DNA of 64,000 bases, taken from assembly GCA_002269645.1 (NCBI GenBank), contig NIVC01000293.1, positions 1 through 64,000 on the forward strand, in the 5' to 3' direction. The notes beneath the pieces are model-generated. The model was given only the letters and a program-made list of their open reading frames with translations. It was not told where the DNA came from and searched no databases. This stretch comes from Macrostomum lignano (Eukaryota). The translations under genes and the position numbers were made by a program. Every line of letters begins with the position of its first letter. The stretch's first letter is position 1. Shown in pieces: positions 3,301 to 63,990 of the stretch.

Positions 3301-4771
3301 ATTATGATCGGCTCCTTACAATGGTCATTTCCTTATATCAGCTGTTCGAGAAATTCAATGGAGATTCCCAGAGTCTACTGAGATCGCTGCGGGTGCTCCA
3401 ATGCGCATTTTATTAACAACAGCTGCAAGCATCCGAGGCCTGTCAGCGAAATGTCGGCTGCACCAGGAGTGCGAGAATGGAACCATCGAAGTCCCGATCC
3501 GTGTTGTAAGATATAATCAAAATATTTGATACTTAATGAAGGCAAAAAGAAATAATAATTTTGGCTAAACATATTTGGCATCCGATTAATGTCTATTAAG
3601 GTTGATACTATTTGATATATACTTCTTGTGCGAAGTACTAGCCATATTTCCCACAATATGCATACACCATCAATTATGAAGTTCACTCGTCGTTTTACCT
3701 GCTACCACAGGATCGAATCGTCTCGACATCTTCGGGAAAAGTATTCCAGTTTTTTGGACGATGGCAGCGTCAAGTGTGCAGCCGCAATGTGTCTTGCGCA
3801 TTCTCTGTGCCAGGAATGCTCGGTTCGATTGAATTCAGCCAATTACCTCCAGGTATTGCTGTTGACCTCTCTTGTGATTCATTTATTTCATAACAGCTCA
3901 TAAAAACATGCGTTCTTAATGCATTTACAACCGTTTCTCCGTTTTATTGATTTCAGTTGAACCAAATGACTTACAGCTTAAGTTGATTGATCCTGAGCTG
4001 TGGCTACTCAACGGAGCAATTCAGTTCCGTGCGGTTTCCAAACACGCCTGTCCCAGTGTGAGGCACCGCTGTGAGCTGAGGACGGCTACTAACTATTCGA
4101 TTCCCGCGACGCTAATAAAGAAGGTTGTTTTTGTCTGTTGGCAGCATTATGTAGCTCGCTATGTGCAAGATAGTATGCTTTGCTTAACTTCAGGATGTCT
4201 CGAAGCCCATCGGGCCGCAGTGCTTCAGCTCGGTGATGTCGCAGTTCTTGGCGTTCGCTCAGCCATCAGACGTAGCGGGTTCCACCGTGAGGTGCCGCCT
4301 GCTCAACGGCAGCTCTGCGCTGCTCGTGCTTCCCGAAAAGGGTTTTGGTGAGTTTCGCAGCTGATTTCAGATGTTATACACGAGAAAGCAGCCCTGCTTT
4401 AAATATCGCCTCCATCAACAGGAGAGACGAGGCTGGCCGAAGTCTGGGAGCGGCCACTGCTAGCAGCTTCATCAACTACGGCTGTTCTCGCCATCATTGC
4501 ACTGGTAGCAGTGGTGGCCTGCTTTGTGCTGATGAGATCTGGTCGGTGGCCACCTTGGAAAAAATCTCCGGATGCGTCAGTAGTGAATGAGTCAATGAAG
4601 ATGCAAATGACAGTCAGTAACCAATATTATGGCGAATCAGCAGGCATTGTAAGCAGCTTTAATGTGATTTGAGGCACCAGACTTCATCATATTTTCAGCA
4701 ATGTCAAATTATTAATCATGCTTGCATCCGACTTTCAGCCTGATGACTCAACCGGAGTTTACGTCACGTGA
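316..4771 (+). pseudogene. Paralog A1: CUB-domain type I membrane protein (SP-CUB-CUB-W-P-W-P-TM-tail), disrupted
   Basis: Predicted exons 316-391 (signal peptide MKTCTRFFRYFQLIVFGLLFWFSPS), 469-817, 902-1237, 1631-1791, 1985-2132, 2289-2458, 2666-2816, 3342-3505, 3711-3852, 3957-4123, 4194-4347, 4422-4648 (TM AVLAIIALVAVVACFVLM), 4739-4771 (PDDSTGVYVT*). All are GT-AG with matching phases. Lesions: 2-nt deletion at ~729 relative to A2 (TGA at 753-755) and in-frame TGA at 2000-2002. Confidence 0.85.
2860..3030. repeat. AT-rich / (TA)n low-complexity tract in an A1 intron
   Basis: Runs of TATATA and AATATAT; the matching A2 intron lacks the long tract. Confidence 0.75.
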
Positions 4772-4971
4772 AAGAGCCACCAAAAATGACTAATTACTAC
4801 ATACAGAAGACGATCGATACGAGCTAAAAAACCTAAAAATCTAGGGCAGTAACTTTTTCTAAAATTTTTAAATACCTAGGTCTATTGCTGCTATAGTTTT
4901 ACTTTGCTTAAAAGTCAGTAATTACTTTCAACATTAGGTGTATATGTATCTGATAAATTCGGCAACTTTTG

Positions 4972-62700: not shown

Positions 62701-63990
62701 CTGCGTGTCCAGAATCATCTGCAACTTCACCGCACCGAACGGTTGGCACCGAATTGAATCGGTGGTACCTCAAACAGGTTAGAGTTGTGCCGTGTCTAAT
62801 ATAAAGGCTCTACTAGTAGATATGAATTTTGCATGCACAAATTATTCAATACGACAATTTCCCCCCCCCCCCAAAAATAAACTTAGTTCTGCCAAGCACC
62901 ATTCAGATCGACTTAACAACCGAAAGCAGTTGGTCAGAAGAGAGTGAGATCTACTTCACGGCTACATCCTACAACACGTGCTCAAGTGCACGGCACCAGT
63001 GTCAGTTAAGGTTCGACAACGGTAGTACTCAGTTTTTCGAGTCAGTTAGCTTAGTGAGTACGATGCATTCGATTAATTTATTTAACTTATATATCTCCTC
63101 CTTATAAACGCGAGTACAACACTATCTGTTTCAGACACTGAATTACACAACCTACGTTTGCAATACCTCTCTACTCTGCAAACTAGCTTTGCTTTGCCGG
63201 CGAACACATCGATTGTTGAGGGTCACGAAATCGCGTGTCTGCTTTCTGGAGGCGATTTTGAGGTTTATAAGTTTAAAGAGCCTCAAAATGGTAAGCAAAA
63301 AATTAGAAAAATTTGGAATACCTCTCTGTCTGTCTGTCTGTCTGTCTGTCTGTCTGTCTGTCTGTCTGTCTGTCTGTCTGTCTGTCTGTCTGTCTGTCTG
63401 TCTGTCTGTCTGTCTGTCTGTCTGTCTGTCTGTCTGTCTGTCTGTCTGTCTGTCTGTCTGTGTGTCTGTCTGTCTGTCTGTCTGTCTGTCTGTCTGTCTG
63501 TCTGTCTGTCTGTCTGTCTGTCTGTCTGTCTGTCTGTCTGTCTGTCTGTCTGTCTGTGTCTGTCTTTCTGTCCGTCTATCTTTTTGCCACATGGCTAAAA
63601 GCTGTCAAATTAATTACATAAAAATTCAGTTGGATTTTTTGGCATTTCTCCCACGAGTAAAAGTCTCCAACAACAAGTGGAGCTGATACTGCGCACATCC
63701 GCTTCAATAGTTCCAATACTTTTTGTTGCTGCCTCCATTCTGACGGCAGTCTTGGTTGGGCTGAAGCTACATGTAGGTGTACATCAGGAACCTGTGTCAC
63801 CAACGCAGGCTTCACCGAAAACTAACGAAATTCATCCGGAACCTTCGGTCTCTGAAGAGGCTTCGATTCAAGTAAAAAATCCTGTGGTAAGTCAACTTTA
63901 ATGCTTTTTAAAAATCTCAGTATTTTTTTACTGATTTGGTCAATAATTTTTTTTCAGTACACTGACAACATTGAAGTGTATGTTACGTAA
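59721..63990 (+). CDS. Paralog E: SP-CUB-CUB-W-P-W-P-TM-tail (~784 aa if repaired); probable 2-nt frameshift in the last ectodomain exon
   Basis: Predicted exons 59721-59799 ([26 protein letters not shown]), 59908-60270, 60616-60966, 61407-61588, 61684-61846, 61924-62087, 62159-62297, 62344-62552, 62636-62777, 62887-63053, 63135-63290 (156 nt vs 154 in paralogs), 63678-63886 (TM), 63958-63990 ([10 protein letters not shown]). Confidence 0.8.
60276..60498. repeat. (AGT)n microsatellite at the start of intron 2 of E
   Basis: Begins 6 nt after the GTGAGA donor at 60271. Confidence 0.95.
63323..63570. repeat. (TCTG)n microsatellite in the intron before the TM exon of E
   Basis: About 60 tetranucleotide units. 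Confidence 0.97.

Follow-up and report, generated by a model that had tools for sequence, protein, structure and literature searches.

The window analysed here is a stretch of 64,000 nucleotides of the Mlig_3_7 assembly of Macrostomum lignano (NIVC01000293.1:1-64000, G+C content ~40%). It holds a head-to-tail array of paralogous genes on the + strand, with exons that match the Pfam CUB domain. The original prediction stated that six paralogs in this array (A1, A2, B, C, D and E) each end in a dedicated exon of 27–33 nt, the last codons of which encode VY[V/L][T/N] followed by a stop. These terminal coding micro-exons and the tetrapeptide that they encode are the subject of this analysis. All six were found on the + strand with the positions and translations claimed (Table 1). 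Each is preceded by a pyrimidine tract and CAG (ccgactttcag in A1 and A2, tacgctttcag in B, taaattttcag in C, tgccttacag in D and ttttttttcag in E) and continues in phase 0 from the exon encoding the membrane span, which ends at a GT donor. The last introns that separate the two exons measure 90, 90, 88, 560, 64 and 71 nt in A1, A2, B, C, D and E, respectively. Although six copies carry the motif, they do not represent six independent cases: the micro-exons of A1 and A2 are identical and their last introns agree at 89 of 90 positions, and we therefore count the two as one lineage, which gives five lineages in the window (A, B, C, D and E). The length of 27–33 nt is correct for the coding sequence but not for the whole exon, because a 3′ terminal exon must also carry the 3′ untranslated region; the micro-exon is only its coding start. 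A scan for poly(A) signals past the stop codons revealed no consistent pattern.

GenBank gene models of the NIVC01 assembly are not ab initio annotation: they derive from StringTie/TACO assemblies of RNA-seq data together with de novo transcripts that had been mapped, and TransDecoder called the reading frames (PMC5730564). Three such models use a micro-exon as their coding end. The first is that of gene B, which corresponds at 100% identity to P0012 (PAA86082.1, BOX15_Mlig019335g1, 817 aa), a protein encoded by 11 coding exons; the contig stretch around this model (L003, NIVC01000293.1:19708-45313) matches the window exactly at offset 19708. The second is an intact A copy (P0001) present on contig NIVC01000829.1 (L001), which aligns with the window at 84–97% identity. 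Spliced alignment reproduces the model of this copy with its 13 coding exons, the last of which (33 nt, CCTGATGAC...GTCACGTGA) encodes PDDSTGVYVT-stop, follows tccgactttcag and joins in phase 0 to GCAGGCATT/gtaagc. The third belongs to a seventh and more distant paralog of similar layout, F (P0014, PAA75150.1), on contig NIVC01000900.1 (L002); its last coding exon has 39 nt and is likewise in phase 0. Because the GenBank models derive from transcripts, the splice from the membrane-span exon to the micro-exon is transcript-supported in B, in the intact A copy and in F, and the micro-exons are real coding ends. UniProt predictions with accessions beginning A0A1I8 also finish in the micro-exon for A1-like, A2 and E copies; these skip exons and were given little weight. 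Exact-sequence look-ups of P0001, P0012 and P0014 returned GenBank assembly contigs only and no RNA-derived contigs.

The number and placement of the matches were also compared with chance. In the six frames of the window, VY[V/L][T/N]-stop occurs 7 times, always on the + strand, against 0.26 occurrences expected from Markov-1 simulations, and the 600-nt stretches that follow the six donors should together contain ~0.007 matches by chance. The excess is therefore not due to chance. An artefactual origin, in which the micro-exons would be unused and the proteins would end in or just past the membrane-span exon, gains something from the short frames that follow read-through of the donors (VSSFNVI-stop in A1 and A2, VS-stop and VSQL-stop), which make truncated tails possible, and from C, D and E having no transcript-based model. 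However, all 7 matches are correctly placed and in phase, and the models of B, the intact A copy and F contradict this explanation for these three genes; we consider it extremely improbable. The hypothetical read-through tails, which would be 32 aa long in B and 36 aa in C, had also been proposed as a signalling switch. This proposal found no support: such tails are a trivial outcome of intron retention, and no transcript, isoform or protein model of that kind was seen. The last intron of C contains a second candidate terminal exon (Table 1), with a weak pyrimidine tract and a TG-rich context, that differs from the copy at 44515 at all synonymous sites. The chance expectation of a VYVT-stop candidate in this intron is ~0.001, and the candidate could have arisen by an old duplication or serve as an alternative terminal exon.

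Codon comparisons locate the conservation at the level of the peptide. Across lineages, most third positions of the motif codons vary, as does the stop codon, and the peptide stays constant (Table 1). By contrast, the four to six residues upstream in the same exon are unrelated (PDDSTG, PASE, GISLTG, DSHVAS, YTDNIE and NQVSE in A to F). The synonymous differences and the unrelated upstream codons together argue for purifying selection on VY[V/L][T/N] and against gene conversion or a nucleotide signal. Conservation of a splicing or 3′-end element, or conversion between tandem copies, would suit the tandem arrangement of the genes and the recent A1 and A2 copies, in which the intron is as conserved as the exon. 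Nevertheless, between lineages the 15 nt of the motif and stop codon diverge at silent positions, the adjacent 12–18 nt leave no room for a conversion tract and F lies on another contig, and we regard both versions of this explanation as very improbable. A comparison among A1, A2 and L001 was discarded as a test of selection, the intron being conserved as much as the exon. We hold with high confidence that the tail motif is real, translated and selected. The original prediction had reached selection on the tetrapeptide by another route, namely that the rest of the tails does not align. The tetrapeptide stands as the conserved element of the exon, but the premise does not hold throughout, as the tails of C and D align with each other (RFSxYxTx(E/D)YENS).

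Table 1. Genes, membrane-span exons, terminal coding micro-exons and motif codons. Positions refer to the window unless another contig is named; a slash marks the exon–intron boundary.
Feature	Position	Strand	Details
Gene A1, 13 coding exons, disabled	316-4771	+	2-nt deletion near 729/730 (exon 2); TGA 2000-2002 (exon 5)
Gene A2, disabled	16007-22733	+	TGA 20099-20101 (exon 5)
Gene B, intact, 817 aa, BOX15_Mlig019335g1	29708-35313	+	P0012 at 100% identity
Gene C, intact 10-exon model, 805 aa; first exon tentative	39448-44547	+	Splice sites and phase
Gene D, probable pseudogene; first exon tentative	48603-53587	+	TAA 49938-49940 in CUB2 exon
Gene E	59721-63990	+	Frame open only via donor gtacga after 63057
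A1 exon, membrane span and most of tail	4425-4648	+	Donor GGCATT/gtaagc, phase 0
A2 exon, membrane span and most of tail	22387-22610	+	Donor GGCATT/gtaagc, phase 0
B exon, membrane span and most of tail	35014-35198	+	Donor AAGCAT/gtaagt, phase 0
C fused exon, second half of last Ig-like domain, membrane span and tail	43568-43954	+	Donor AACTCG/gtatgt, phase 0
D exon, membrane span and tail	53282-53490	+	Donor AACTCA/gtaagt, phase 0
E exon, membrane span and tail	63630-63886	+	Donor CCTGTG/gtaagt, phase 0
A1 micro-exon	4739-4771	+	PDDSTGVYVT-stop; junction same as in annotated intact A copy P0001
A2 micro-exon	22701-22733	+	PDDSTGVYVT-stop, identical to that of A1; sequence
B micro-exon	35287-35313	+	PASEVYLN-stop; last of 11 coding exons of P0012 (PAA86082.1), 100% identity
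C micro-exon	44515-44547	+	GISLTGVYVT-stop; completes open 805-aa model
C second candidate terminal exon	44242-44277	+	RFLPESCVYVT-stop; in 560-nt last intron, phase 0 after AG 44240-44241
D micro-exon	53555-53587	+	DSHVASVYVT-stop; sequence
E micro-exon	63958-63990	+	Sequence; also in UniProt prediction P0010
Paralog F, last coding exon	L002 10783-10821 (NIVC01000900.1)		NQVSEVYVTLPN-stop
Lineage A, last four codons and stop			GTT TAC GTC ACG TGA
Lineage B, last four codons and stop			GTC TAT TTG AAC TAA
Lineage C, last four codons and stop			GTT TAT GTC ACC TGA
Lineage D, last four codons and stop			GTG TAC GTC ACC TAA
Lineage E, last four codons and stop			GTG TAT GTT ACG TAA
Lineage F, VYVT codons and next codon			GTT TAC GTC ACG TTA ...

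The copies in the array differ in their integrity. Cross-paralog spliced alignment of P0001 and P0012 to C, D and E over-fits the non-homologous middles of the genes; only the conserved blocks were trusted, and the models of C and E were rebuilt from splice sites and phase. The resulting C model has the same intron phases as B and nearly equal exon sizes, and its protein has no entry in any protein collection searched. The exon 5 stop of A1 corresponds to a change from CGA to TGA and that of A2 to a change from TTA to TGA; in D, homology in the CUB4 region is lost past ~51121. A1, A2 and D look like decaying copies, with an assembly error still possible for the small A1 deletion, and the disabling changes suggest gene birth and death in the cluster. 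Gene E has two donors four bases apart (63054-63063), gtgagt after 63053 and gtacga after 63057, and the reading frame through its last Ig-like module, membrane span and VYVT end is kept solely by the weaker, downstream donor. In A2, the intron between exon 3 (ending at 16935) and exon 4 (starting at 19716) has expanded to ~2.8 kb, compared with 422 nt in the L001 copy. In this expanded intron (16936-19715), exon 4 is present a second time (17287-17460), and a 23-nt satellite with ~50 copies occupies 17880-19040.

A database homology search with a rough model of the C protein returned one relative, P0001, which ends in ...SNQYYGESAGIPDDSTGVYVT. We then used a family profile of the two-exon module next to the membrane, made from single-exon alignment rows. 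Because the profile excluded the membrane span and the tail, the C-termini of its matches are independent of the query. Among 1.84 billion cluster representatives, the profile matched 10 proteins, all from M. lignano, and this membrane-adjacent Ig (immunoglobulin)-like module has no detectable relative outside the species in that collection. Tail-bearing representatives of lineages A, B, E and F carry the motif, and two of the matches, P0005 and P0009, are truncated before the membrane span. Together with P0016 and P0017, these are B-like or F-like UniProt A0A1I8 models that stop short of the span (...QQTTSKYLFANFL, ...KTFTESSE); their products would be soluble ectodomains, and the models could reflect either genuine secreted isoforms or artefacts of the prediction. 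The family has been annotated so far solely as hypothetical or CUB-domain proteins, and literature searches with the Mlig gene identifiers and with 'VYVT' found no paper mentioning these genes or the motif.

Exons of C score 23.4 and 36.7 bits against the Pfam CUB family (PF00431; cut-off of 21.4 bits), and P0001 scores 66.7 bits over two stretches; as these scores exceed the gathering cut-off, the proteins are assigned to the CUB family. Among solved CUB structures, those of cubilin and PCPE-1 are nearest in sequence. The Pfam Ig families gave no listed match to C exons 6-9 or to P0001. An AlphaFold (AF2) model of the last 280 residues of B, with a mean predicted local distance difference test score (pLDDT) of 72.8 from an alignment of only 5 rows, shows a pair of beta-sandwich domains and a membrane helix, with a tail modelled at low confidence. 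The top Foldseek matches of this model in the PDB are tandem Ig-like domains, namely Fab light chains and T cell receptor chains, with E ~1e-5 and TM-scores of just 0.3–0.45. The predicted layout starts with a signal peptide and two to four CUB domains, continues with Ig-like domains and a single membrane span, and finishes in a disordered, tyrosine-rich tail of 35–62 residues; the window genes are accordingly modelled as encoding single-pass type I membrane proteins. The tail is predicted to be disordered (pLDDT <50) after the helix, has basic residues directly past it and is predicted to be cytoplasmic.

The original prediction held that the tetrapeptide is not a strict immunoreceptor tyrosine-based inhibitory motif (ITIM), an immunoreceptor tyrosine-based switch motif (ITSM) or a hydrophobic-ending PDZ ligand, and pattern scans agree. 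The ITIM pattern [S/I/V/L]-x-Y-x-x-[I/V/L] matches 0 of 6 tails, and neither the ITSM pattern T-x-Y-x-x-[V/I] nor the class I and II PDZ patterns ([S/T]-x-Φ-COOH and Φ-x-Φ-COOH) match any tail, the ends being Thr, Asn or, in F, LPN. Paralog F is informative here, as it ends in EVYVTLPN, three residues beyond VYVT, with a TTA codon that is one base from TAA or TGA, and this end is kept in several copies (P0008, P0014 and P0015). Because F reads EVYVTLPN-stop, the motif need not be a free C-terminus, which weakens any PDZ-type or carboxylate-dependent reading. In such a reading, the tetrapeptide would be a ligand for an atypical PDZ domain or a similar module and would depend on its free carboxylate, as do the ends of ephrin-B (YYKV), neurexin (EYYV) and syndecan (EFYA). 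These type I membrane proteins likewise have a tyrosine within the last four residues, with hydrophobic flanks, and keep this end across paralogs with varying tails; a separate last exon is common for ligands of this kind, and in A–E the motif stands at the very C-terminus with the spacing hydrophobic-Tyr-hydrophobic-X. However, the three known ends are class II PDZ ligands whose final residue is hydrophobic, whereas the M. lignano ends finish on Thr or Asn and fit neither class, and F retains the motif with LPN after it. We judge a carboxylate-dependent ligand to be quite unlikely.

A trafficking signal, either a YxxΦ endocytic or lysosomal signal (Φ being a bulky hydrophobic residue) or a signal for export from the endoplasmic reticulum and delivery to the surface, would explain the motif without a phosphotyrosine site. 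The YVTL of F is a canonical YxxΦ, the splice junction of E creates NPV/Y, which resembles NPxY, and the shortness of the tails and their closeness to the membrane recall LAMP or CD63-type proteins. By contrast, F is the only lineage to match YxxΦ: the other five of the six stop two residues past the tyrosine and lack the hydrophobic residue at Y+3 that AP-2 mu2 requires. Moreover, the last residue is polar (Thr or Asn), unlike in known C-terminal hydrophobic export signals. This possibility is also unlikely, if a little less so than that of a carboxylate ligand.

Chance, gene conversion, nucleotide-level constraint and a PDZ ligand were all rejected as explanations. In the explanation that we favour, the family inherited a phase-0 intron that precedes a C-terminal VY[V/L][T/N] by four to six codons. 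The proteins consequently end on the first 27–39 nt of a 3′ terminal exon, in which selection on the peptide keeps four residues, as the synonymous differences between lineages show, and the remainder of the micro-exon drifts, together with most of the tail. VY[V/L][T/N] would then be a short linear docking motif whose tyrosine, when phosphorylated, would be recognised by an SH2-type adaptor, and it would be one among several sites of the form Yx[T/N] in these tails (YEN, YQT, YLT and internal YVT). We assign a probability of roughly 0.55 to this explanation as a whole. Its parts differ in strength. That the tetrapeptide is a protein-docking short motif of some kind is likely. That it is specifically a phosphotyrosine/SH2 site is a tentative proposal, which we nonetheless favour over sorting or a free-C-terminus ligand because the motif of F is internal and Yx[T/N] recurs in the tails. 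Specifically, 11 of the 16 tyrosines in the tails of A–F lie in Yx[T/N], including YQT and YEN in C, YVT and YEN in D, and YLT in F. Of these sites, YLN in B and the YEN inside the tails of C and D match the Grb2-type pattern Y-x-N and would fit a pYxN site, whereas VYVT does not match.

Several observations weigh against this explanation. The tyrosine is followed by two residues only, and most SH2 domains, like AP-2 mu2, would bind such an end poorly; VYVT also lacks the Asn needed by Grb2. Because C and D are closely related, few independent events underlie the surplus of Yx[T/N] sites, and the micro-exons of A1, A2 and D say little about present-day selection because these copies are disabled. 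At the window locus, direct transcript evidence is limited to B and does not extend to A1, A2, C, D or E; B is the sole annotated gene between 9708 and 45313, in which stretch A2 and C have no transcript-based model. Finally, no reports of phosphorylation, expression or partners were located in the literature for these genes.

Known systems offer partial parallels. Like the predicted M. lignano proteins, SOL-1 and LEV-10 of C. elegans, NETO1/2, CDCP1 and CSMD are single-pass (type I) membrane proteins that have a signal peptide, several CUB domains and a short cytoplasmic tail; in their case, the tail carries docking motifs. In CDCP1, tail tyrosines are phosphorylated by Src, and NETO and CSMD2 have C-terminal PDZ ligands. 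A link between CSMD2 and PSD-95 has been reported (PMC6506821). The CUB domains of M. lignano differ in that they precede predicted Ig-like modules and not LDLa or Sushi domains, VY[V/L][T/N] is not among the known tail motifs of these receptors and the likeness is one of layout that implies no orthology. The short disordered tails, predicted Ig-like domains and repeated tyrosine contexts of the family have parallels in receptors with Grb2 pYxN sites, ITIMs or ITSMs, and the B and C/D sites noted above match YxN; VYVT, however, has Thr and not Asn at +2 and matches neither of the immunoreceptor motifs. In the C2′ cassette of GluN1 (STVV), the final docking residues are likewise separated by an intron, an arrangement that in principle permits alternative ends. 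By contrast, no alternative isoform was seen here, and the second candidate exon of C would encode the same VYVT end.

If the docking site is real, the motif would be the one fixed intracellular feature amid diverging ectodomains and tails and decaying members, a pattern that would be typical of recognition receptors feeding a common pathway. It would also provide a starting point from which to identify the function and the partner of these uncharacterised receptors, a lineage-restricted family in a species in which transgenesis works (PMC5730564). A bolder version, which we put forward as speculation with the odds well against it, is that VY[V/L][T/N] represents an undescribed class of tyrosine-based docking motif in Macrostomum-specific CUB-Ig receptors that evolve fast by birth and death, linking all of them to one intracellular adaptor, and that the family could act in recognition (immunity, mating or self/non-self). 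The broader value is modest in any case: many proteins have a short, conserved C-terminal motif encoded by a separate last exon, the exon structure of B was already public through GenBank and the understanding of such motifs is unchanged.

Other elements of the window lie between and within the genes. Between C and D, positions 47338-47983 contain a reverse-transcriptase fragment (Pfam RVT_1, E = 8e-11) with broken frames, probably a decayed retroelement. Minisatellite arrays at 19182-19284, 24801-25035 and 37174-37612, located in the expanded intron of A2 and in intergenic sequence, all contain related units of ~17–18 nt (TGCTTGCTATCTGGGGG-like), and the third region also includes a 25-nt array (37174-37340). 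Three microsatellites are intronic: (GTTA)n at 33672-33987, in the B intron preceding exon 8; (AGT)75 at 60276-60499, in the intron after the CUB1 exon of E; and (TCTG)65 at 63325-63581, in the E intron preceding the membrane-span exon.

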